A stretch of DNA of 64,000 nt from the sequence record NC_042116.1, one strand, 5' to 3'. The notes below the pieces were generated by a model. It saw only the letters and a list, made by a program, of their open reading frames with translations, did not search any database and was not told the DNA's origin. The position numbers and the translations under genes were made by a program. Shown here one piece after another: positions 2,747-59,327 of the stretch. How positions within the stretch are numbered: the first letter of the stretch is position 1; each line of letters begins with the position of its first letter.

Positions 2747-5700
2747 ATGTATATAGATGGATATATGGAACGAAAGAGGACAAAAGAAGTCCTTCACGTG
2801 GCTGAACGTGTTAATGGTAAACGTATTTTGCGAGAAATTGAACCTGTTTATGAGTATTTTGTAGAATCTCCATCAGGAACATTCAAAACTATCAATGGTA
2901 CTATGGCTGAAAAGTTTGAATTTACTAGACATCATGAAATGAAGCAAACTATGGAGAAATTACCTAGTACTGCAAAGATTTATGAATCTGATTGTAATGT
3001 TACATTTAAAACTTTAGCAAAACACTATATGGGTAAGCCATCTCCAGATTTAAATATAGTATTTTTCGATATCGAAACTGATTTTCATCCAAAATTTGGA
3101 TATGCATCTCCAAGTGATCCTTTCAACCGAGTAACTGCAATTTCTTTATATCAAAGCTGGACAGGAAAGGACTATGTTCTTACAATGGCACCTTCTGATA
3201 TGGATAATGTAGAAGCACAAGATATTATCAACCGTTTGAACCACGAAACTAATGACCCTAACAGTACTGTATTGTTATATACAGATGAAGCTGAAATGTT
3301 TTCGGATTTTTTCGATTTGATTGAAGATTCTGACATTTTATCAGGATGGAATAGTGAATTTTATGATATTCCTTATATGGTTAATAGAACTCGTAAGATA
3401 TTCAACGAAGCGACTTTAGCTAGATGGTGCTTGTGGAATCGAAAGCCAAATGCTCGTGAAGCTGATATGTTTGGTAAAACTATTGTAACATATGACCTAG
3501 TTGGTCGTGTACACTTAGATTATCTTTCATTATATAAGAAACATGCTGGTCAAGTAGAACAATCTTATAAATTGGACTATATTGCTGAAAAAGTAACTGG
3601 TGAAAACAAAGTTTCATATGATGGTTCATTGGATAAGTTGTATCGAGAAGATTACTTAACGTTTTTACGTTATTCTAAACAAGATAGTATTCTATTAAAG
3701 AAAATAGATGATAAGATGGACTTCATTAATCTACATAACCGATTGGCTCATAAAGAATGTGTACTTATTAGTACTACAATGGGTTCAGTGGCATTGATTG
3801 ATACTGCTATCATTAATCTATCTCATAAACGTGGTGAAGTAGTATTCAATAAACGAAAACTTGATGATGAAGATGAAAGTTATGATTATCAAGAATATGA
3901 AGATTATGATGATGAGGACGAAGACGACGAACCAAAAGCAGGATCGAAAGCCGCAGGTGCATGGGTACAAGATCCAGTACTTGGATTAATTGACTTCTTG
4001 GGTTGTATTGACTTTAACTCATTATATCCAACAGTATTACGTGCGTTAGGTATGAGTACTGAATGTATTCTTGGACAATTGCGTCAAACATATACTGATG
4101 CATATCTTGCTGAACGTATTGATGAACAACGAATGAAATTCCGTGGAAGAGGTAAATTTGAACCTAAATGGACTGAAGCATGGCATGGTTTATTTGCTAG
4201 TGTTGAATTTACAATGGTTCGTGAGAAATCAGACGATATTATCACTGTAGATTTGGAAGATGGTTCATCATTCCAAGCATCTGGTGCAGAATTATATGAT
4301 ATTATATTTGGTGAAGATAGTACTATAGTATTAAGTGCTAATGGTACATTGTTTGATAAAACCAAGTATGGTGTAATTCCTGAAATTCTTACTATTTGGT
4401 ATTCTGAACGTAAAGCTCAGCAAAAAATGGTAATCGATTACAAACATCTTGCAACGGATGGTTGGGAATTAGCAAGTGAAATTGTTTCTGAATTAGAAGA
4501 AGCATTAAAATTATTACAATATGGTAATAGTTTGCATAAAACGAACTTACATGAAGACGACCCTGTATATCTTATTAGATTAGCATTGGGATCTGGTGAT
4601 ATAAGTTCAGCAGCTAAGATCATTGCTGATAATGGTATGCGTTTTGAAGGTGGTAAGTTGTATTCACCTGAAGAAGATAAAAAGTACTGTAAAGTTCAAT
4701 CATCTTTCTGGAAACAGAATCAACAAATCCGTAAAATTTTGTTAAACTCACTATATGGTGCGTTATTGAACAAAGGTTCTAGATTCTTTGATAAGAGATT
4801 AGGTCAATCAGTAACCTTAACGGGTCGTAGTATGACTAAACACCTTGCAAGTAAGATTAATGAAGTATGTACTGAAAATTATGATCATGGTGGTGGTGTA
4901 GTTGTATATGGTGATACCGATTCTGTGTATTTTAGTGTAGCACATTATTATAAAGAGAATGATATTTCATTTGATTTATCTAAAGAAGAAGTAATTGAGC
5001 TATATCAAATGATTGGTGATACAGTAGGTTCATCATTCCCATCATTTATGGATGAAACCTTTAATACTGGTATAGATAATGGTAAAATTGTAGGGGCTGA
5101 TCTGGAAATGGTAGGTTCTCGTGGTCTATTTTTGAAAAAGAAACGCTATGCTATACTAAAATATTGGGAAGATGGTTTCCGTTTAGATGTTGAAGGTAAA
5201 CCTGGAAAAGTTAAAGCAATGGGTCTTGAAATTAAACGTTCAGATACACCAAAATACATTCAAAATTTCTTAGAAGACACATTAACATCATTGCTTGTTG
5301 GGTCAGAAGAAGATGTATTACGTGCGAAAGTTCGTGAATTCAAAAAGCTATTCAAAGATCGTCCTTCATATGAGAAAGGTCAACCTAAAACCGTTAAAAA
5401 TTATTCTAATAAATTTAAAGAATATGAAGAAACTGGTAAATGTAGAGTTGGACATGTTCTTGCAGCAATACAATGGAACAAATTACGTACTATATATGAT
5501 GATATGACTGTTCCAGAAGCAACTGATGGAACTAAAGTTATAGTTTGTAAGTTAAAACCAAATCCATATGGTATTACATCGGTTGGCTATCCTATTGACT
5601 GTACCGAATATCTACCAGAATGGTTTTTATCATTACCATTTGATGACGATGATATGGAAAAAGCAGTACTAACTAAAAAATTAGGAAATATATTTGGTAT

Positions 5701-5773
5701 TTTGGATATGGACTTGGCTATTGATGAAAAAAGTTCAATTGAATTGAATACTGGTTTCCTAGAGTGGATATAA
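2747..5773 (+). CDS. gp43: Family B DNA polymerase (T4 gp43-like) with 3'-5' exonuclease
   Basis: ExoI FFDIETD, ExoII GWNSEFYDIPY, motif A IDFNSLYP, motif B KILLNSLYG, motif C YGDTDS. Confidence 0.97.
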   Translation: MYIDGYMERKRTKEVLHVAERVNGKRILREIEPVYEYFVESPSGTFKTINGTMAEKFEFTRHHEMKQTMEKLPSTAKIYESDCNVTFKTLAKHYMGKPSPDLNIVFFDIETDFHPKFGYASPSDPFNRVTAISLYQSWTGKDYVLTMAPSDMDNVEAQDIINRLNHETNDPNSTVLLYTDEAEMFSDFFDLIEDSDILSGWNSEFYDIPYMVNRTRKIFNEATLARWCLWNRKPNAREADMFGKTIVTYDLVGRVHLDYLSLYKKHAGQVEQSYKLDYIAEKVTGENKVSYDGSLDKLYREDYLTFLRYSKQDSILLKKIDDKMDFINLHNRLAHKECVLISTTMGSVALIDTAIINLSHKRGEVVFNKRKLDDEDESYDYQEYEDYDDEDEDDEPKAGSKAAGAWVQDPVLGLIDFLGCIDFNSLYPTVLRALGMSTECILGQLRQTYTDAYLAERIDEQRMKFRGRGKFEPKWTEAWHGLFASVEFTMVREKSDDIITVDLEDGSSFQASGAELYDIIFGEDSTIVLSANGTLFDKTKYGVIPEILTIWYSERKAQQKMVIDYKHLATDGWELASEIVSELEEALKLLQYGNSLHKTNLHEDDPVYLIRLALGSGDISSAAKIIADNGMRFEGGKLYSPEEDKKYCKVQSSFWKQNQQIRKILLNSLYGALLNKGSRFFDKRLGQSVTLTGRSMTKHLASKINEVCTENYDHGGGVVVYGDTDSVYFSVAHYYKENDISFDLSKEEVIELYQMIGDTVGSSFPSFMDETFNTGIDNGKIVGADLEMVGSRGLFLKKKRYAILKYWEDGFRLDVEGKPGKVKAMGLEIKRSDTPKYIQNFLEDTLTSLLVGSEEDVLRAKVREFKKLFKDRPSYEKGQPKTVKNYSNKFKEYEETGKCRVGHVLAAIQWNKLRTIYDDMTVPEATDGTKVIVCKLKPNPYGITSVGYPIDCTEYLPEWFLSLPFDDDDMEKAVLTKKLGNIFGILDMDLAIDEKSSIELNTGFLEWI

Positions 5774-5784
5774 AAGGAAAATAT

Positions 5785-6237
5785 ATGAATAACTATGACA
5801 ATCTTTTTCAAAGAATTGGAGAAGCATTAACTTCTGGTGGTGAATATAACATTATTCGTGCTAATGATGATAATGAAATTGCCATTTTGAATAATGCTGG
5901 ATTTGTACAAATTGGATCTATGAAAGATGGAGACACTATAGTGTCTCTATTTAAAATTGAGTTAAAAGCAAAAGAAGTTATTAAAATAGTAGAAGTACCT
6001 ACTAAACTATCACCACCTTGGAATAATTCTCCAATTGATCGTCAACCATTTTGGGATAATTCACCAAATGACCGTCAACCTTACATAACTAATACTCCAC
6101 ATATAATGTATAGTACTGGAACTGGTGATACATCAGAATGGATGTATAAAAAATACAACAATTCTGTAGATCTTACTTTATCAACAGAACTATACAAATT
6201 AGCAACTCTTAAAGCACCTAAACATAATAATACTTAA
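5785..6237 (+). CDS. Hypothetical protein (start revised to ATG 5785)
   Basis: ORF with AAGGA SD; no recognisable motif. Confidence 0.6.
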   Translation: MNNYDNLFQRIGEALTSGGEYNIIRANDDNEIAILNNAGFVQIGSMKDGDTIVSLFKIELKAKEVIKIVEVPTKLSPPWNNSPIDRQPFWDNSPNDRQPYITNTPHIMYSTGTGDTSEWMYKKYNNSVDLTLSTELYKLATLKAPKHNNT

Positions 6238-6243
6238 AATTTT

Positions 6244-6272
6244 TGAAACGTATACAATTAATCTGGTATAAT
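6244..6272 (+). promoter_or_regulatory. TGRAAY-N17-TATAAT promoter overlapped by a 14-bp perfect inverted repeat
   Basis: tgaaac 6244-6249, tataat 6267-6272; IR arms 6247-6260 and 6269-6282. Confidence 0.75.
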
Positions 6273-6303
6273 TGTATACGTTAACAACATGGAGAATTAA
6301 CAA

Positions 6304-7035
6304 ATGGAATTACGTGACGTACTACGCGACCTAGTAACTACAACTGCTGGAATTGATTTTGATTGTATCGCTATTTCTAGTGAAGATCGGGGTCAAGGTC
6401 AACGAATTTATATGGAAGCATATACTGGCGATAAAAACTTAGTTATGAGAGCATATACTAAGGAAGATGTACCTGAAGTTGTTGGGCGTTTTGGTATTGG
6501 TAATCTTGGAATGCTTCAAGGTCTATTAAATCTAAATGTTTACAAATCAGAAAGTACTAAAATAAGTGTGAATGCAAAAGATGGTATTGTAAAAAGTCTT
6601 TCATTTGCTTCAGACGATGCAAACACCAACTATCTAGTAGTTGCAGAAAAATTTATTCCACCTCAACCACGTTTCACTGACAAACCATATGACGTACAGG
6701 TTACACCTAGTGCTTCAAAAGTCAATGAGCTAAAAAGCTTCTCAGGAGTGTTTAAATCATTCACTGCTCACGTTACTCCCTTTACTGAGAACGGAAGTTT
6801 GTATTTTTACGTAGGTGAGAAGAATAAAAATAACCATACAGGTACATTATTATTCTCTAAAACAGATGGTGAGTTATCTCAAGGTTATGGCTATCCTATT
6901 GAACGTGTTCTACAAGCATTGAACCGCGTATCCAATGCTGAACAAAAATCAATTGGGATTACCAAAACTGGTATGTTTAATGTAACAGTAGATACTGGTA
7001 TTGCAGTTTATAGCATCTATGTAAGTGGTTGCTAA
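6304..7035 (+). CDS. Putative sliding clamp (gp45/PCNA-like)
   Basis: 243 aa with a two-domain alpha/beta pattern, GxFGIGNLxxL motif and terminal FNVTVDTGIAVYSIYV strand, close to PolB; judged by eye. Confidence 0.6.
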   Translation: MELRDVLRDLVTTTAGIDFDCIAISSEDRGQGQRIYMEAYTGDKNLVMRAYTKEDVPEVVGRFGIGNLGMLQGLLNLNVYKSESTKISVNAKDGIVKSLSFASDDANTNYLVVAEKFIPPQPRFTDKPYDVQVTPSASKVNELKSFSGVFKSFTAHVTPFTENGSLYFYVGEKNKNNHTGTLLFSKTDGELSQGYGYPIERVLQALNRVSNAEQKSIGITKTGMFNVTVDTGIAVYSIYVSGC

Positions 7036-12544: not shown

Positions 12545-15536
<2,992 letters not shown>

Positions 15537-18523: not shown

Positions 18524-19363
18524 ATGACAGAACTTGATAAATTTTTTAATAATGTTATGGTTCTAGACACTGAAACTACTGGTGTTGATGATGAATCTGA
18601 TATTATTGAGTTTAGTAGCTCATTTCCAGAAGGAAGTAATGATTCTTTTGATGGAATGATGAATTTTACTACTAGATTCAAACCAACACATGATGTTCCA
18701 CCTGATGCGTCAGCAGTACATTTTATTACAACTGAAGATTTGATAAATGAACAGACCTATTCAGTTGGACATTATGATTTTTACCCATTATTCAAACTAA
18801 AACAGTACTTTGTAGGACATAATGTGCAGTTTGATCGAAGAATGCTTCGTAAAAATCATGAACGTATGTTTGATGACGAATTTCCAGAATTTGAGGATGA
18901 CAATAGTTGGATTTGTACGTTAAAATTAGCTAAAAAATTATTTGCAGAAGACCCTGAGTTTAAAAACTTAACTTTAAGCTATTTGTGGTTCAAATTTGAG
19001 TTGTATAAAACATGTACACGTAAAATTGTACCACATAGTGCTGAAGATGATGTATATATGTGTTATAAAGTACTTTCTCATTTAGTAAATATTGCTATTG
19101 AACGTGGGTTGGTTGATACCAATAAGGAAATTGGACGACAACTGGTTAAATTATGCAATACTCCAACTTTATTCACCGTAATGACTATTGGTAAGCATAA
19201 AGGTATGTTACTTGATGAAGTACCAATGAATTATTTAAAATGGATGATTTTGAACATGGATATTGTAAATCCAGACATGCCTAACTATGATGCTGACTTA
19301 GCATATACAGTTGAAGTCGAGATTACTCGTCGCATTGATGCTGGATTGGTGGATTTTAGTTAA
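18524..19363 (+). CDS. DEDDh 3'-5' exonuclease (ExoX/DnaQ-like) with C-terminal DUF3820-like motif
   Basis: VLDTETTG, VGHNVQFD, HSAEDD; C-terminal MTIGKHKG...VPMNYLKWM. Confidence 0.9.
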   Translation: MTELDKFFNNVMVLDTETTGVDDESDIIEFSSSFPEGSNDSFDGMMNFTTRFKPTHDVPPDASAVHFITTEDLINEQTYSVGHYDFYPLFKLKQYFVGHNVQFDRRMLRKNHERMFDDEFPEFEDDNSWICTLKLAKKLFAEDPEFKNLTLSYLWFKFELYKTCTRKIVPHSAEDDVYMCYKVLSHLVNIAIERGLVDTNKEIGRQLVKLCNTPTLFTVMTIGKHKGMLLDEVPMNYLKWMILNMDIVNPDMPNYDADLAYTVEVEITRRIDAGLVDFS

Positions 19364-20880: not shown

Positions 20881-20901
20881 AAAGATTTTTTATGATATAA
20901 T
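20873..20901 (+). promoter_or_regulatory. TGRAAY-N17-TATAAT promoter
   Basis: tggaat 20873-20878, spacer ending tga, tataat 20896-20901. Confidence 0.7.
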
Positions 20902-22736: not shown

Positions 22737-23439
22737 AGGGGCTGCAAAAGCCCCTATTTTTAAATGTAGGTTTTGTGATAAAGAATTCAAACGTGAAAGT
22801 ACATTAATAACTCATGTTTGCATTAAACGTGATCGATATAATGATCGTGAATCAAGACCAATGCGTGAAGCATATCGTTTATATATGATGTTTATGGAAG
22901 CTCATAGACTAGCAATGAAAAAGTCAGAAGAACCACTGATGCAATTTATCAAATCTAGATATTTTAATGATTTCTTTGATTTTGGTCAATATATTTTATC
23001 ACATGATATTCTAAATAAAGAACAATTCATTAAGTACATTTTAACTAGTGGGAAACCCGTATTTGAATGGAAATCTCATAAAGTACTTGAAGAATGGGTT
23101 ATAAAATGTATTAGAGAAGAACACCCTCGTAGAGCAATAGAACGTTCTATCAATGCGTTGGTAGAATGGGGTAATGTTACAGATAACGATTGGGTTGATT
23201 TTTTTGATAATGTAAGTACTGAACGAGCAATTATGTGGTTAGAAACAGGTAAAATTTCTCCGTGGTTAATATATATTGCAGATCCAGCTAGTGGAAACAA
23301 ATTGTTAAATCGGTTTGGTGATTCAGATTTAGATTATCTTGTTCGTTTTATTGACCCAACATACTTTAAAATACTTCAAATACGTTATAGTGATGAAGTA
23401 AATGAAATACGAAGTTTATTAACAGAGGCTGGGCTATGA
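22720..23439 (+). CDS. Hypothetical protein with N-terminal C2HC zinc-finger-like motif
   Basis: FKCRFCDKEFKRESTLITHVC; GKISPWLIY motif. Confidence 0.7.
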   Translation: MAKTTKGAAKAPIFKCRFCDKEFKRESTLITHVCIKRDRYNDRESRPMREAYRLYMMFMEAHRLAMKKSEEPLMQFIKSRYFNDFFDFGQYILSHDILNKEQFIKYILTSGKPVFEWKSHKVLEEWVIKCIREEHPRRAIERSINALVEWGNVTDNDWVDFFDNVSTERAIMWLETGKISPWLIYIADPASGNKLLNRFGDSDLDYLVRFIDPTYFKILQIRYSDEVNEIRSLLTEAGL

Positions 23440-23786
23440 AAAGTAAAATATACAGTGAACAAGAATTAACTACAGAAGAATTAGCTAAAAAAGAAGAATT
23501 GAAAGAAGATAGCAAACAACTATCAATTTTAAGACAAGGTTCTGTAACAGAAATTACAATGAGCGGGAAAACGTTTCAGGTTTCCGACCCTAAACGAATT
23601 GAACATGCAATTATAATTTTAGAACGACATGAAGAAGTCCTATTTACGTTAAGGCAACGTATCAAAGAACAAACTCAATCTATTAATATTTTGCTAAATG
23701 AAATTGAGAAATTGAAATCTGATGTTCAGAGATTGAAAGAGGAAAGTAATAATGGATTTGGATCACAAGAGTACACAAACTATTAA
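23436..23786 (+). CDS. Hypothetical coiled-coil protein
   Basis: Heptad-rich C-terminal half; ATGA overlap. Confidence 0.6.
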   Translation: MKSKIYSEQELTTEELAKKEELKEDSKQLSILRQGSVTEITMSGKTFQVSDPKRIEHAIIILERHEEVLFTLRQRIKEQTQSINILLNEIEKLKSDVQRLKEESNNGFGSQEYTNY

Positions 23787-24402
23787 TTATAGAAAGGCAA
23801 GAACTGATATTGACATTGATTTTAAAGATGGAAAATCAGTTATTGAACAACTTCCTTGTACTAGAAGTGTTGAAAAAATCACAGAAGATGGTTTGATTCC
23901 ACACAATAGTGGTATACATTTTGATAATATCCCAACTGACCCAATTTCTGGATTAGCATCTATACCATATAAAGAAGCCGAAAGGTTAGGATATCAAAAA
24001 GTTGATATTTTATCTCAATCGGCTTATGTACATGTGCGTGATAGAAATCATCTTAAAGAATTGATGAATAAAGAACCAGATTGGAATTTATTATTGGTTC
24101 CTGAAATAGTAGATCAATTGTCTCAAATTAAGAAACATATAACTTTGTTGAATATATGGAAACCTAGTAGTATCGATGAATTAGCAATGTTTATTGCAAT
24201 GATACGTCCAGGTAAACGTCAATGTCAAAGTATGAATAGTTGGGACGAAGTTCGGGCTGTTATTTGGGAGTATGATAGTATTGGACTCGATGCAGAAGGT
24301 AAAAAGTTAAGATACTTTAAAAAACCTCATGCATTCGCATATAGTTTGATGATAGTAGTTCAGTTAAATGCATTAGTAGAATATATTATTTCCTCTTCTT
24401 AA
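23752..24402 (+). CDS. DnaE (Pol III alpha)-like fragment carrying the catalytic palm (C-part of split mini-polymerase)
   Basis: RKARTDIDIDF = ERVSMPDFDVDF; HNSGIHF = HAGGVVI; GYQKVDIL = GLVKFDFL; IRPG = FRPG; FKKPHAFAY = FNKSHSAAY. Confidence 0.88.
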   Translation: MDLDHKSTQTINYRKARTDIDIDFKDGKSVIEQLPCTRSVEKITEDGLIPHNSGIHFDNIPTDPISGLASIPYKEAERLGYQKVDILSQSAYVHVRDRNHLKELMNKEPDWNLLLVPEIVDQLSQIKKHITLLNIWKPSSIDELAMFIAMIRPGKRQCQSMNSWDEVRAVIWEYDSIGLDAEGKKLRYFKKPHAFAYSLMIVVQLNALVEYIISSS

Positions 24403-24747: not shown

Positions 24748-24788
24748 CATAAATATTGTATAAAATGATAAATTATATATTATTTATA
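24748..24788. promoter_or_regulatory. Back-to-back late-type promoters (CATAAATA + at 24748; TATAAATA - at 24781-24788)
   Basis: Both octamers lie in the short divergent intergenic gap. Confidence 0.5.
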
Positions 24789-26886: not shown

Positions 26887-28368
26887 ATGGCAATTAATAC
26901 TAACACGGACGTTAAAAAATATGATATTCAATACCAACTATATTTGCTTTCACAAATTTTTAGTACTCCCGATTTATATGTAAGATGTAAAAATGTTTTA
27001 AAACCTGACTACTTCGATAGAGAATATCATGCTAGTATTCAGTATGTTCATGATTATGCAGCTAAGTATAATATAACTCCAACTTTAAATGATATTAAAC
27101 ATAATTCGGATTTTACATTTAATGAAACTCCAGTTGGTGATTTAAATCAACAAGCAGTACTAGATAGTGTAGGTGAATTTTGTCGGCATAAAGCATTAGC
27201 ACAAGCAATTCAACAAGGAATGGAATTAGTTAATCAAAAACGCTATGGTGGAATTGAAGAATTAATTCGTGAAGCAATGTTGGTGAGTGTACAAAATGAT
27301 TTAGGTTTAGACATTTATGAAGATCCTGAAGAAGTTATAAGTTCATTAGCAACAATGCAAGGGACTTTTAAATCTGGATGGGAAACTCTTGATTATAAAT
27401 TATTTGGTGGTTTTGGTCGCCAAGAATTAGAAATATTTGCTGCTGCATCTGGTGGTGGTAAATCTGTAGTACTTCAAAATTTAGCAGTTAATTTTAGTAA
27501 AGCTGGTTTGAATGGTGCATATATTACATTAGAACTTGCTAAAGAACTTGTTGCAGTTCGTATATATGGTATGTTAGTTAATACTGCACAGATTCGTGTT
27601 AAAGTTGATATTGATGAAACTGCTGCTAAAGTTAAAATTGAAGAAAGAACAAATGGTAAATTACGTGTTCATCGACTTCCTGAATCAGTAACAACCGTTA
27701 ATGATATTGAAAGTTATATTCGTGAATTACAAATTAAAACAGGTATTAAACTAGATTATGTTTGTGTGGATTATCTTGATTTGTTAACATCAGACCGTTG
27801 TGGTCCAAATGATAAATCAAACGCTTTCGTTAAAGATAAATTTGTATCTGAAGAATTACGTGCACTTGCTATGAAAATGGACTTAACGGTGTTCACTGCA
27901 TGTCAGTTTAACCGTAGTGGTGTTGGTGGTGAAGATATAAAAAGTCAAGCACAAATTGCAGGTGGTATTTCGAAAATTTATACCGCAGATAATGTAATTT
28001 ACATCGATGCTCGTAAAGATCGTGGAGAAATGGTATTTGATTTCCAGAAAACACGTAACAGTTCAGCAGTAGGCTCACGTTTAGTTATGTCATATGATGT
28101 AGACTCATTAAGAGTACTTGATCATTATCAAACCATTCAAGAAATGCAAATTAATACTTCATTTAGACATAGTGGTAAGGTTATGGTTGGTAATGGTGAT
28201 CTAATAGCTAACCCTACTATATCTGCACCTAATGCATTGAACAAATTACAAAATACGTTATCAACAGTAAATCAAAAATCTACCATTCAAACATCGACTG
28301 ATATAAATACACCAAAGGCTGATGATAAAGTTTCAAATATACGAAACTTTTTGAATGGTAGGACATAA
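26887..28368 (+). CDS. gp41: Replicative DnaB-like helicase (T4 gp41-like)
   Basis: Walker A AASGGGKS, YITLE, VCVDYLDL, TACQFNR, QKTRN. Confidence 0.95.
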   Translation: MAINTNTDVKKYDIQYQLYLLSQIFSTPDLYVRCKNVLKPDYFDREYHASIQYVHDYAAKYNITPTLNDIKHNSDFTFNETPVGDLNQQAVLDSVGEFCRHKALAQAIQQGMELVNQKRYGGIEELIREAMLVSVQNDLGLDIYEDPEEVISSLATMQGTFKSGWETLDYKLFGGFGRQELEIFAAASGGGKSVVLQNLAVNFSKAGLNGAYITLELAKELVAVRIYGMLVNTAQIRVKVDIDETAAKVKIEERTNGKLRVHRLPESVTTVNDIESYIRELQIKTGIKLDYVCVDYLDLLTSDRCGPNDKSNAFVKDKFVSEELRALAMKMDLTVFTACQFNRSGVGGEDIKSQAQIAGGISKIYTADNVIYIDARKDRGEMVFDFQKTRNSSAVGSRLVMSYDVDSLRVLDHYQTIQEMQINTSFRHSGKVMVGNGDLIANPTISAPNALNKLQNTLSTVNQKSTIQTSTDINTPKADDKVSNIRNFLNGRT

Positions 28369-34146: not shown

Positions 34147-34154
34147 TATAAATA
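34147..34154 (+). promoter_or_regulatory. Late promoter TATAAATA upstream of nrdA
   Basis: Exact consensus 46 nt before ATG. Confidence 0.55.
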
Positions 34155-37357: not shown

Positions 37358-38065
37358 ATGTCAGTATTCAAAATTAATACAAAAAGTCACTTAGAAAAAA
37401 ATATGTTTTTCGATGAATCTGTTGATATTCAACGGTTTGAATCGTTGAAATATCCAGCAATTGAAAAACTAACAGAATCACAAAAAGGATTCTTTTGGTC
37501 ACCAGATGAAGTAGATCTATCTAAAGATCGATTAGATTTTAAAACACTTACAGATCATGAGAAACATATTTTCACATCTAATCTAAAACGTCAAATTCTA
37601 CTTGACTCAGTACAAGGTCGTGGTCCCAATTTAGTACTACTACCATATGCGTCACTACCTGAATTAGAAAACTTTATTGAAACATGGGCATTTTTTGAAG
37701 GTGCTATCCATAGTAAATCTTATACACATATTATTCGCAACGTATATTCAAATCCATCTGAAGTTTTTGATACAATGCTTGACATTCCAGAAATCACAAG
37801 CTGTGCCGCAGATATTTCAAAGTACTATGATGATTTAGATTTATATGGTACTTATTACCGTTTACTTGGTGAAGGTACTCATACAGTTAATGGTGAAAAA
37901 ATTATCATTGATTTGTATGAATTAAAGAAGAAGTTGTGGTTATGTTTGAATTCCATCAACATCTTAGAAGGAGTTCGTTTCTATGTGAGCTTTGTATGTT
38001 CCTGGGCTTTTAGTGAAATTGAAAAGATGGAAGGTAATGGTAAGATTATCAAATTGATTTGCCGT
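37358..38065 (+). CDS. nrdB: Ribonucleotide reductase small subunit, exon 1
   Basis: GFFWSPDEVDL, LLDSVQGRG, IHSKSY (radical Tyr), EGVRFY, ends MEGNGKIIKLICR. Confidence 0.95.
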
Positions 38066-38160
38066 TAATTTGAGCGGCCTTGTATAGTAATATACATTGA
38101 ATAACCCTATATATCGGTGAAACTCTTAACAAGTAATGTTGAAGACAATACCGAGATTTT

Positions 38161-38198
38161 TATAAATATCCATATGAGATGAAAACATACATGTGGAG
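38161..38198 (+). promoter_or_regulatory. Intron-internal late promoter TATAAATA and SD-sequestering hairpin for the homing endonuclease
   Basis: TATAAATA 38161-38168; tccatatg (38169-76) pairs with catgtgga (38190-97) covering the GGAG SD. Confidence 0.7.
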
Positions 38199-38205
38199 TA
38201 TTTGA

Positions 38206-38943
38206 ATGAAAGATGATTTTTACGTATATATTTGGTATAACCCTGAAAACAATAAACCATTTTATGTTGGAAAAGGAACTGGTAAAAGAGCATATGATGT
38301 AAATGATAAAAGCCGAAATGCTTTCTTCATGAGAAAGTACAATAAAATTAAAAGTACTGGCTTAGATCCATATGTTATTATTGAATATGATAATTTATCT
38401 GAGAGTGATGCACTCGCAAAAGAACACGAATTAATATTAAAATACAAACCTACATTTGAAGGTGGTATTTTAACAAATTTGTCATATTCAACTGGTGGAA
38501 AATCAACAATATCAGAAAGTACAAGAGATAAATTATCTCATAAATCTTCAGGTGAAAAAAATGGAATGGCTAGATTCACTAAAGAAGAAATAGTGGAATG
38601 CTTTGAACTGTTGATTAAAGGTTATAGTAATAAAGAAGTTGAGAAAGAAACTAATATACCGTCACATGTAATATCTGATTTACGATATGGTAAAAAGTGG
38701 AAAACGGTATATGAAATTTACAAAAACAAACTGGTAAATCTTAAAATATCTGGCTTGAATAAATATAATTTGTCATTTGAAGATAAAGTTAATATTATAC
38801 ATGATATTGCAACCAGAGATAAAAATACTCAACTTAAAGATATAGCAAAGAAATATAATGTAAAAGAAACCATGATTGTTTCCATCAATTTAAAAAGACA
38901 GTGGAAAAATATATGGCAATATTATCTTGATAAAAAATCGTAA
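38206..38943 (+). CDS. Intron-encoded GIY-YIG homing endonuclease with C-terminal HTH repeats
   Basis: FYVYIWY...FYVGKGTGKR, conserved E and N; two HTH-like C-terminal repeats; stop codon overlaps the P6/P7 junction. Confidence 0.9.
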   Translation: MKDDFYVYIWYNPENNKPFYVGKGTGKRAYDVNDKSRNAFFMRKYNKIKSTGLDPYVIIEYDNLSESDALAKEHELILKYKPTFEGGILTNLSYSTGGKSTISESTRDKLSHKSSGEKNGMARFTKEEIVECFELLIKGYSNKEVEKETNIPSHVISDLRYGKKWKTVYEIYKNKLVNLKISGLNKYNLSFEDKVNIIHDIATRDKNTQLKDIAKKYNVKETMIVSINLKRQWKNIWQYYLDKKS

Positions 38944-39108
38944 CGACTATCGAAACCACATAGAGATATGGAAGGGAGTAGAGTACTCTCAAGCGAGGGG
39001 AAACGTAGGGAATCCAGAAATGGATTATGATATAGTCTGGTCTATATAGAAATATATAGCAGCTTGGATAAAGCGGAGATAGATTAGCGAACTATCTTGA
39101 ACATCACG

Positions 39109-39525
39109 GATGAGAACTTACACTTAGCAGCAACACAAATGATATTACGTTTGCTAAAGAAAGAAGATCCTGATTTTGCTAAAATAGCAGAAGAATGTCA
39201 TGATGAAGTACAACAAATGTTCTTAGATGCTATTCAGCAAGAAGAAGAATGGGCAGACTTCTTATTCAAGGATGGTTCTATAATTGGTCTAAACGCACCA
39301 ATTCTAAAACAATATATTCGTTGGATTGGTTGTAAGAGAATGAGTGCTGTGGGTATTAAATGTCCGTACAGTATTAGTCAGAATAACCCTTTACCTTGGA
39401 CGACGAGTTGGATTAGTGGTGCAGATGTACAAGTAGCTCCACAAGAAACTGAAATTAGTTCATATATCATTGGTGGTGTAGTTAATGACATTTCTGAAGA
39501 ATCTTTTAAAGGTTTAGAAATATAA
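39109..39525 (+). CDS. nrdB: Ribonucleotide reductase small subunit, exon 2
   Basis: Begins DENLH (iron ligands), ends VAPQETEISSY; spliced product 374 aa. Confidence 0.95.
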   Translation, partial: DENLHLAATQMILRLLKKEDPDFAKIAEECHDEVQQMFLDAIQQEEEWADFLFKDGSIIGLNAPILKQYIRWIGCKRMSAVGIKCPYSISQNNPLPWTTSWISGADVQVAPQETEISSYIIGGVVNDISEESFKGLEI

Positions 39526-56072: not shown

Positions 56073-56100
56073 AAGGACGCATAATGCGTCCTTTATTTTT
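56073..56100 (+). terminator. Intrinsic terminator (AAGGACGC family)
   Basis: aaggacgca-taa-tgcgtcctt plus T-rich tail. Confidence 0.75.
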
Positions 56101-56158
56101 AATCGTATACATATAATAAATACCACAAAGCTTTTTATGTTTTTGGAGATAATAATAT

Positions 56159-58528: not shown

Positions 58529-58831
58529 ATGTTTCATCCATTTTTCGACCCATCATCTTTAAGTGATAAAGAACTATATGATAAAATAACTGAAGTTTCT
58601 GTTAGAATCTCTGCTGCTAGAACATCAGGGATTCAATTTGAAATTATACAATCAATGTACACATTAATTCACGCATGTGAAGAAGAGATTAGAACTAGGC
58701 AAGCTCACAAAGATCTTGAGAGTGTTTCTAAGGAAGATAATTGTGTATTTGATTCAGATAGTTATTTAAATGACAAAGATGATAAAAAGAATGAAAATAC
58801 AAAAAAACAGAACTATAAGCGAGGATGGTGA
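58529..58831 (+). CDS. Hypothetical protein
   Basis: MFHPFFDPSSLSDKELYDKI helical hairpin; AAGG SD. Confidence 0.65.
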   Translation: MFHPFFDPSSLSDKELYDKITEVSVRISAARTSGIQFEIIQSMYTLIHACEEEIRTRQAHKDLESVSKEDNCVFDSDSYLNDKDDKKNENTKKQNYKRGW

Positions 58832-59309
58832 TGTTCGTTTAGATCTGAATGCTGTTGTTTATGCTATAAACTGCGGCACAGACATTACTTATATCCAGCT
58901 TAATGAGCAAGATGAAGTTGAACGATTGAAGTTCAATGATAATTGTAAAAAATTTGGACTTACTGAACGTATGCTAGATTATAAAATAGAACATGATAAA
59001 AATCATGAACTATGGAGATATGATCCAGTATATGATAAAATCAACTTAGAAGATTATTTCCTTTCTTTATGTAGTACTGATGTTGAACGTGATCGAGTAC
59101 TATATGAATTAGGATTGTATGAAAATTATAATATGACCAAACTATTAAGATGTATGATATGGTTGGTAGATTATCTTGACGAACATAATATTTTTTGGGG
59201 ATTAGGTCGTGGAAGTTCAGTAAGCAGCTTTTGTTTGTATTTGATTGGATTACATTTGGTTGATTCAGTGAAATACGAATTAGATGTGAACGAATTTTTG
59301 AAATGGTAA
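58791..59309 (+). CDS. DnaE (Pol III alpha)-like fragment with GS motif (N-part of split mini-polymerase)
   Basis: RDRVLYEL...WGLGRGSSVSSFCLYLIGLHLVDSVKYELDVNEFLK = ERL..EL...[36 protein letters not shown]; start uncertain (58770/58779/58791). Confidence 0.88.
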   Translation: MKIQKNRTISEDGDVRLDLNAVVYAINCGTDITYIQLNEQDEVERLKFNDNCKKFGLTERMLDYKIEHDKNHELWRYDPVYDKINLEDYFLSLCSTDVERDRVLYELGLYENYNMTKLLRCMIWLVDYLDEHNIFWGLGRGSSVSSFCLYLIGLHLVDSVKYELDVNEFLKW

Positions 59310-59327
59310 AAAAAATTATGGTATAAT
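59299..59327 (+). promoter_or_regulatory. TGRAAY-N17-TATAAT promoter
   Basis: tgaaat 59299-59304, A8 in spacer, tataat 59322-59327. Confidence 0.72.

Follow-up and report, generated by a model that had tools for sequence, protein, structure and literature searches.

Two small proteins encoded far apart in a jumbo-phage genome, g324 and g280, are probably the subunits of a phage-specific minimal C-family (DnaE-type) DNA polymerase that would assemble non-covalently around a composite active site. Both genes lie in the window analysed here, a stretch of 64,000 nucleotides covering record positions 186001-250000 of Yersinia phage fHe-Yen9-04 (NC_042116.1; 100% identity by megablast; window position x is record position x + 186000), a Rak2-like jumbo myovirus in the genus Eneladusvirus with a genome of 354 kb. 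The g324 product (58791..59309, + strand; 172 amino acids (aa)) would be the N-terminal, nucleotide-binding subunit of a minimal split DNA polymerase III (Pol III) alpha, and the g280 product (23752..24402, + strand; 216 aa) the C-terminal, metal-binding and template-binding subunit, containing the second part of the palm and a reduced index/middle finger. The split into two genes is real, but it had been predicted before by computational means. A split minimal Pol III alpha from group 2.2 jumbo phages was described in 2021 by Iyer, Anantharaman, Krishnan, Burroughs and Aravind, and the novelty implied in a preliminary description of g324 therefore falls away (Viruses 13:63; PMC7824862). Their system, found in gammaproteobacterial jumbo phages and in Atu_ph07, consists of two proteins encoded by genes far apart, one N-terminal and NTP-binding, the other C-terminal and binding Mg2+ and template. 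It occurs beside a T4-type replisome and a family-B polymerase, with which it possibly cooperates in the synthesis of one strand or in repair; the same authors argue that bacterial replicases may have been built up from a minimal nucleotidyltransferase (PMC7824862). The g324/g280 pair matches this system on every described point and represents one more member. Full-text literature searches found no experimental follow-up of the prediction, and a 2026 jumbo-phage review makes no mention of a split mini-polymerase. To the 2021 description we add a residue-level map, including an acidic swap at the position of E. coli R390 and a retained H760 gate, together with naturally fused forms, synteny and a phylogenetic tree.

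The interval 58791-59309 coincides exactly with the annotated coding sequence g324 (YP_009623934.1), which is labelled "DNA polymerase" in RefSeq and "hypothetical protein" in the original GenBank entries. The preliminary description had taken it for the GS-motif half of a DnaE-type enzyme, and both profile searches and direct alignment to E. coli DnaE bear this out. The protein matches the Pfam family DNA_pol3_alpha (PF07733) with E = 1.4e-7 and 31.9 bits against a curated cut-off of 23.9, profile positions 23-95 of 260 falling on residues 106-178 of a 179-aa open reading frame (ORF; the match covers its last 73 residues), and it matches the PHROG family phrog_11127, "DNA polymerase", with E = 4.6e-84. 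The g324 family profile aligns to E. coli DnaE residues 322-392, and when segments are lined up with the E. coli K-12 dnaE sequence, g324 residues 134-172 run parallel to DnaE 356-394. Residues from about 95 to 172 are thus the counterpart of DnaE palm residues 322-394, and residues 1 to about 75 are specific to the family; Pfam matches no PHP domain in g324, nor in any other ORF scanned. The GS motif G139-R140-G141-S142-S143 (59205..59219, +), equivalent to E. coli G361-R362-G363-S364-G365, is invariant in all 23 family members compared. The C-terminus reads as the preliminary description had quoted it and ends where that description had placed it, at the junction between the FERFL helix and the catalytic strand: the last residue, W172, aligns with DnaE P394, the F-L of the helix is conserved, and the chain stops two residues past the helix and six residues short of catalytic D401. 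In a fold search, an AlphaFold2 model of g324 (predicted local distance difference test score (pLDDT) 83.9) gave Foldseek matches in the PDB whose top ten are all Pol III alpha, albeit weak ones, with PolC lower in the list.

The separate catalytic half anticipated in the preliminary description is g280, whose end lies 34,388 bp from the start of g324 (24402 to 58791). It matches PHROG family phrog_11778, "DNA polymerase", with E = 1e-105; both halves carry the label "DNA polymerase" in PHROGs and RefSeq, in separate PHROG families. Pfam gives nothing at E<=0.1 for g280 itself, and its homology is therefore shown through relatives, motifs and fold. Seven of the 23 members of the g280 family match the Pfam domain DNA_pol3_finger (best E = 3.6e-6), and the family profile has a sole match among PDB sequences, Mycobacterium tuberculosis DnaE1 (5lew; E = 0.0043), over four collinear stretches. 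The AlphaFold2 model of g280 has a pLDDT of 91.1, and its top 12 Foldseek matches in the PDB are all Pol III alpha, with a probability of 0.98-0.99 for the top six; the Pol III alpha fold matches of the two halves come from Thermus, Mycobacterium and E. coli.

The g280-family alignment comprises 23 sequences with identity down to 38%, and its invariant positions are D19, D21, D23, H51, G54, K83, D85, R152, P153, K155, H193 and Y197. The segment RKARTDIDIDF (residues 14-24) corresponds to RVSMPDFDVDF (396-406) of E. coli DnaE, so that the catalytic strand D19-I-D21-I-D23-F (23806..23823, +) is equivalent to D401-F-D403-V-D405-F. K83-V-D85 (23998..24006, +) is equivalent to K553-F-D555, which provides the primer-phosphate lysine and the third catalytic aspartate, and R152-P153-G154 (24205..24213, +) to R639-P640-G641, its arginine and proline being without exception. 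The helix-loop-helix nucleotide-selection motif Y188-F189-K190-K191-P-H193-...-Y197 (24313..24342, +), in full Y-F-K-K-P-H193-A-F-A-Y197, aligns with E. coli Y754-G-F-N-K-S-H760-S-A-A-Y764 and so brings together the equivalents of Y754, F756, K758, H760 and Y764; F189 is kept in 22 of the 23 sequences, and a tyrosine occupies position 187 or 188 in the same number.

Roles for these residues come from 2026 work in which the ternary complex of E. coli Pol III was examined by cryo-electron microscopy (bioRxiv 10.64898/2026.06.29.735100). There R362, G363 and S364 contact the incoming deoxynucleoside triphosphate (dNTP) and the R362A enzyme is dead; D401 and D403 bind metal B; the primer phosphate is contacted by K553, and the K553A enzyme is inactive; R639, P640 and G641 are in contact with the templating base, and the incoming base stacks against Y754; and H760 is the steric gate against ribonucleoside triphosphates. 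R390 lies within 4 Å (<=4 Å) of the dNTP, and R390A reduces catalytic efficiency 27-fold (bioRxiv 10.64898/2026.06.29.735100). With the exception of R390, the dNTP-contacting or essential residues of the E. coli enzyme are conserved in the phage pair and shared out over the two proteins: R362/G363/S364, D401/D403, K553/D555, R639/P640, F756 and H760 all have their counterparts across the 23 members of each family. The Pol-beta-like palm with its three catalytic carboxylates and GS loop is complete, but it extends over two polypeptides. The R390 equivalent is replaced, as the preliminary description had noted; its position is taken by E168 (59292..59294, +), which is glutamate in 20 and aspartate in 3 of the 23 g324-family members. 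This acidic residue might form part of a subunit interface or alter nucleotide preference.

What the pair lacks shows that it is not a full-size DnaE cut in two, and on this point the preliminary description needs correcting. Bacterial DnaE is a single chain of 1160 aa, whereas the two phage halves together amount to about 390 aa in two chains. They share with DnaE and PolC the R-G-S loop, D401/D403/D555, K553, RPG and the Y754/H760 helix-loop-helix, but the PHP domain, the thumb, the little finger with its beta-binding helix-hairpin-helix (HhH) region, the OB domain and the tau-binding tail are all absent. In g280 the absence of the thumb is visible in the spacing from D19 to D85, which is 66 residues compared with about 154 for D401-D555 of E. 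coli, and the model has just a beta-hairpin at the thumb position. The C-terminus of g280 lies about 20 residues past the H760-equivalent motif, with no beta-clamp-binding/HhH, OB or tau-binding module, and its leader before the catalytic strand consists of 18 poorly conserved residues modelled with low confidence and missing from some relatives. The phage pair further differs from bacterial DnaE in its change of R390 to E/D and in coexisting with a family-B replicase and a T4-type replisome.

Several observations indicate that the halves belong together. They are exactly complementary, g324 ending at DnaE position 394 and g280 aligning from position 396. Searches with tblastn returned 96 records for g280 and 106 for g324, about 13 of the latter being ordinary full-length DnaE, with equal per-genus counts, and the two halves co-occur in about 95 phage genomes. 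Among the matches listed for both halves the genes are always tens of kb apart, as in RaK2, PA5oct and Atu_ph07; XacN1, Xoo-sp13 and RAS14 appear, among the matches listed, with the C-half only. Synteny with Pseudomonas phage PA5oct is kept at both loci: downstream of the N-half come, in this order, a small ORF and a GroES-like gene, and downstream of the C-half an antisense ORF, a structural gene and primase. A C-half profile search of a 50%-identity library retrieved 694 protein clusters, nearly all of 180-220 aa, showing that this family is large and under constraint. All but two of the best 150 of these 694 clusters are no longer than 233 aa, and both exceptions are fused proteins.

These single-chain relatives, which join both halves collinearly, are rare proteins of 336-376 aa encoded on metagenomic contigs (L005:1066-2193; L010:519-1649; L006:3171-4181). 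In one of them, P0276 (375 aa), the N-half profile falls on residues 8-185 (hhalign E = 5.8e-33) and the C-half profile on residues 189-372; g324 residues 6-171 align with P0276 residues 11-180 (E = 4e-20) and g280 residues 18-205 with residues 190-374 (E = 5e-28), leaving a linker of 9 residues between the two halves. Two further fused proteins, P0365 and P0366, are 78-81% identical to P0276, the three being 375-376 aa long, and because they come from different samples the fusion is not an assembly artefact. Downstream of the fused gene on L010 lie homologues of g281c (E = 4e-10) and g282 (E = 1e-8), which places it at the C-half locus of a related phage. Divergence is greater in another fused form, P0346 (336 aa, contig L006), whose gene overlaps a PF03090 Replicase gene. 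No relatives of P0276 turned up when IMG/VR viral contigs were scanned. Maximum-likelihood analysis of the C-half sequences puts the fused forms at two points of the tree, both strongly supported and both nested within stand-alone proteins; because of this double nesting, parsimony favours an old split with occasional re-fusion, on a tree that is unrooted and that places P0346 on a long branch.

We propose that g324 and g280 associate non-covalently to form one Pol-beta-like nucleotidyltransferase core. In this core g324 would contribute the R-G-S loop holding the incoming nucleotide, and g280 would contribute the catalytic aspartate triad, the lysine that contacts the primer phosphate, the template-contacting RPG motif and the Tyr/His motif for base stacking and sugar gating. 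Retention of the steric-gate histidine and of the template contacts makes template-directed incorporation of dNTPs the likeliest chemistry. The most likely role is that of an accessory polymerase, acting in gap filling, repair, recombination-linked synthesis or one specialised replication step, rather than that of the main replicase, because PHP, thumb, clamp-binding and OB modules are all lacking in the pair and the phage encodes a family-B replicase with a T4-like replisome. Were the pair active, it would be the smallest known C-family polymerase, with an active site built from two chains in about 390 residues; it would offer a tractable model both of the DnaE core alone and of the build-up of replicases from a minimal nucleotidyltransferase, and would place a second polymerase beside the T4-like replisome in a large jumbo-phage clade, several phages of which are under consideration for phage therapy.

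Some results weigh against this assignment. The statistics of each half are weak when taken alone, and the case rests on the concordance of many lines. Foldseek E-values are poor for both models, at 0.008 for g280 and at best 0.18 (probability 0.82) for g324, as is expected for partial domains. A search of PDB sequences with the N-half profile gave no match at E<=0.01, so that the DnaE homology of g324 rests on the Pfam match and the E. coli alignments. The position of the dNTP-touching R390 is acidic in every g324-family member, and without a thumb or modules for binding the duplex and the clamp, synthesis that is templated and processive cannot be taken for granted. A literature search for biochemical or genetic work on any family member returned the 2021 prediction only.

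The same gaps lend some weight to a different activity, in which the pair is a nucleotidyltransferase but not a template-directed DNA polymerase: a terminal transferase, a primer-linked or protein-linked nucleotide adder, or a maker of signalling or modified nucleotides. The Pol-beta-like fold underlies many non-polymerase transferases, and the loss of the thumb and of the modules that bind duplex DNA and the clamp speaks for this reading, as does the acidic replacement of R390 in all members. However, little or no variation is seen in the RPG motif, the base-stacking tyrosine and the H760-type sugar gate, all of which characterise the templated selection of dNTPs, and one fused relative stands in an operon with a Replicase gene; we regard a non-polymerase transferase as unlikely, though not negligibly so. 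Less probable again is that the two proteins no longer cooperate and have taken up independent roles, the N-half serving for example as a nucleotide-binding regulator. The 34 kb between the genes, their different transcription units and promoter-like motifs, and the family-specific N-terminal domain of about 75 aa in the N-half would all fit such a divergence, but neither half holds a complete active site, the two co-occur strictly across distant phages, and nature has fused them in DnaE order with a short linker, which together make separate functions highly improbable.

A break within a DnaE gene also invites comparison with cyanobacteria, in which DnaE is encoded by two distant genes, split at about residue 770 of the full-length protein and equipped with split-intein pieces that yield a covalently ligated product. 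The likeness is that a catalytic subunit arises from two distant genes, and this precedent is the sole support for the idea that the phage halves are joined covalently by a split intein or by RNA trans-splicing. The phage break falls inside the active-site palm, between DnaE positions 394 and 396, and has no intein, whereas the cyanobacterial break lies far downstream. As the preliminary description had stated, neither an intein nor an intron is present: Pfam detects no intein or other additional domain, and a search of the whole window with Rfam gives no match at gathering score, hence no intron family. A split intein takes up roughly 100 + 35 residues, for which there is no room, since g324 ends abruptly, without extra residues (two past the F-L anchor; relatives end 0-11 residues past FLK), and the leader of g280 is 18 residues long. 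Each gene has its own annotated ribosome-binding site, start and stop, and covalent joining is in our view scarcely credible. Equally improbable is the notion that the ORFs are decaying remnants of a once-acquired host dnaE. Each is a fragment of the DnaE domain set and is often labelled "hypothetical" in RefSeq or GenBank, but the catalytic residues are invariant at 30-40% overall identity, hundreds of clusters conserve their length and ends, and synteny is kept from Rak2-like phages to PA5oct, a conservation pattern that effectively excludes pseudogenes. Family-B polymerases likewise occur in two pieces, as in the split gp43 of some T4-related phages and the two-subunit PolB of some archaea, and PHROGs has separate families for the N-part and C-part of PolB. 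They resemble the pair formed by g324 and g280 in that a replicative-type polymerase is made from two separately translated polypeptides, but they have another fold and are broken between the exonuclease/N-terminal and polymerase regions, whereas the break in the phage pair runs through the nucleotide-binding site of the palm.

A possible origin of this break is suggested by Clostridium phage CS266P1 (OP172775.1, contig L003), in which a full-size DnaE with PHP, palm, finger and HhH regions (2957-6525) is interrupted by an I-HmuI-like HNH endonuclease gene. The ORF upstream of the insertion covers PF07733 positions 2-102 and the downstream ORF covers positions 103-260, beginning at the DIDVDF strand, so that the CS266P1 and jumbo-phage enzymes are broken in the same linker. 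The CS266P1 halves are adjacent (about 0.8 kb) and full-size, whereas those of the jumbo phages are minimal and, in fHe-Yen9-04, 34 kb apart. The 3' end of the insert contains the group-I-core-like sequence GAAGAGAUAGUCUAAUC, and the insert may be a group I intron, although its match to the Rfam group I family is not significant (E = 3.7). A comparable arrangement exists in the fHe-Yen9-04 window, where the ribonucleotide reductase (RNR) small subunit NrdB is encoded in two parts, g298 (37358-38068; Pfam Ribonuc_red_sm positions 6-190) and g300 (39097-39525; positions 189-281), separated by g299 (38206-38943), which has a weak match to an HNH endonuclease PHROG (E = 2e-6). Rfam detects no group I intron in the split nrdB (37358-39525), and the split looks like the work of a homing endonuclease or of an undetected intron. 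Given the same-linker interruption in CS266P1 and the g298/g299/g300 arrangement, homing endonucleases would be splitting genes at conserved sites in the fHe-Yen9-04 genome too, and the DnaE split could plausibly have arisen in this way, although this proposal is drawn by analogy.

The surroundings of the two genes were expected to differ, the preliminary description having placed g324 in a late structural unit and the catalytic half in a replication cluster. The genes g322, g323 and g324 are tightly packed, and g322, the first of them, carries a virion structural annotation; g324 has topoisomerase II and the clamp loader on its flanks, and g280 has UvsW, primase and helicase around it. The contrast is not clean, because g279, annotated as structural, overlaps g280, and g324 lies between two replication genes. 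In PA5oct the homologues of the two halves (EST35_0220 and EST35_0288) have no virion mass-spectrometry flag, unlike their neighbour.

Motifs upstream of the two units also differ. A core resembling a T4 late promoter, ATAAATA (56116..56122, +), lies 37 nucleotides (nt) upstream of g322, and a hairpin terminator at 56073-56093 closes the preceding unit. ATAAATA is rarer than expected in the window (20 copies compared with 56), and the majority of those checked stand, correctly oriented, some 35-90 nt ahead of a gene start (examples are 47-54, 14209-14215, 24749-24755, 28303-28309, 34148-34154 and 56116-56122). Depletion together with placement upstream of gene starts suggests a real promoter class that is avoided inside genes. 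Because the motif precedes RNR, single-stranded DNA-binding protein (SSB) and topoisomerase genes as well as structural genes, it is not a clean late marker. The co-directional run g275-g280 has instead an extended -10 sigma-70-like element of the TGnTATAAT type, TGATATAAT (20893..20901, +), 34 nt upstream of its first gene, g275. The extended -10 element TGNTATAAT is enriched in the window, with 20 copies compared with 10.5 expected and none of 100 shuffles reaching 20, and about half of the copies lie just upstream of a gene start, many of these belonging to replication-gene units (examples are 2322, 6264, 10358, 15581, 15669, 20893, 25793, 32232, 42666, 52571 and 59319); such sites are likely to be host sigma-70-dependent promoters. 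A further promoter-like site, TTGAAA-18-TGGTATAAT (59298-59327), serves g325.

A difference in timing between the two halves, as the preliminary description had suggested, is possible on the basis of these motifs but unproven, because ATAAATA is not late-specific and a terminator-like hairpin (22737-22755) stands between g275 and g280. An extension of this idea would make the split itself a regulatory device, with the nucleotide-binding loop and the catalytic triad carried by separate chains: a temporal AND-gate, in which active polymerase forms solely when the late-like programme of g322-g324 and the sigma-70 programme of g275-g280 overlap, confining synthesis to a late stage that may involve, for example, recombination-dependent replication or gap repair before packaging. 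We regard such a gate as unlikely.

Each half is preceded by an ORF of about 100 aa that overlaps its start: g279 (23436-23786) overlaps g280 by 35 nt and g323 (58529-58831) overlaps g324 by 41 nt. Coiled-coil-type Pfam matches, all weak and below cut-off, were obtained for both, several for g279 and one for g323. The idea that these two genes and two PA5oct upstream genes of equal length are paralogues bridging the halves was dropped when no similarity was found, and because g279 and g323 are not detectably related the parallel in overlap seems coincidental.

The remaining replication genes in the window form a T4-type replisome, with a gp41-like helicase, gp32, UvsX, UvsY and UvsW, Dda, a gp44-like clamp loader and topoisomerase II. 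The family-B DNA polymerase is g256 (2747-5773), named "hypothetical protein" in RefSeq and identified by Pfam exonuclease and polymerase domains and by PHROG phrog_262 (E = 3e-215). The stretch that separates the Pfam domains of g256, about 370 residues long, falls outside any assigned domain. The window also encodes a stand-alone DnaQ/RNase_T-type 3'-5' exonuclease, g273 (18524-19363; Pfam E = 7e-18), which PHROGs labels "DNA polymerase exonuclease subunit". As the family-B polymerase already has an exonuclease domain of its own, g273 could be a proofreading partner of the PHP-less mini-DnaE.

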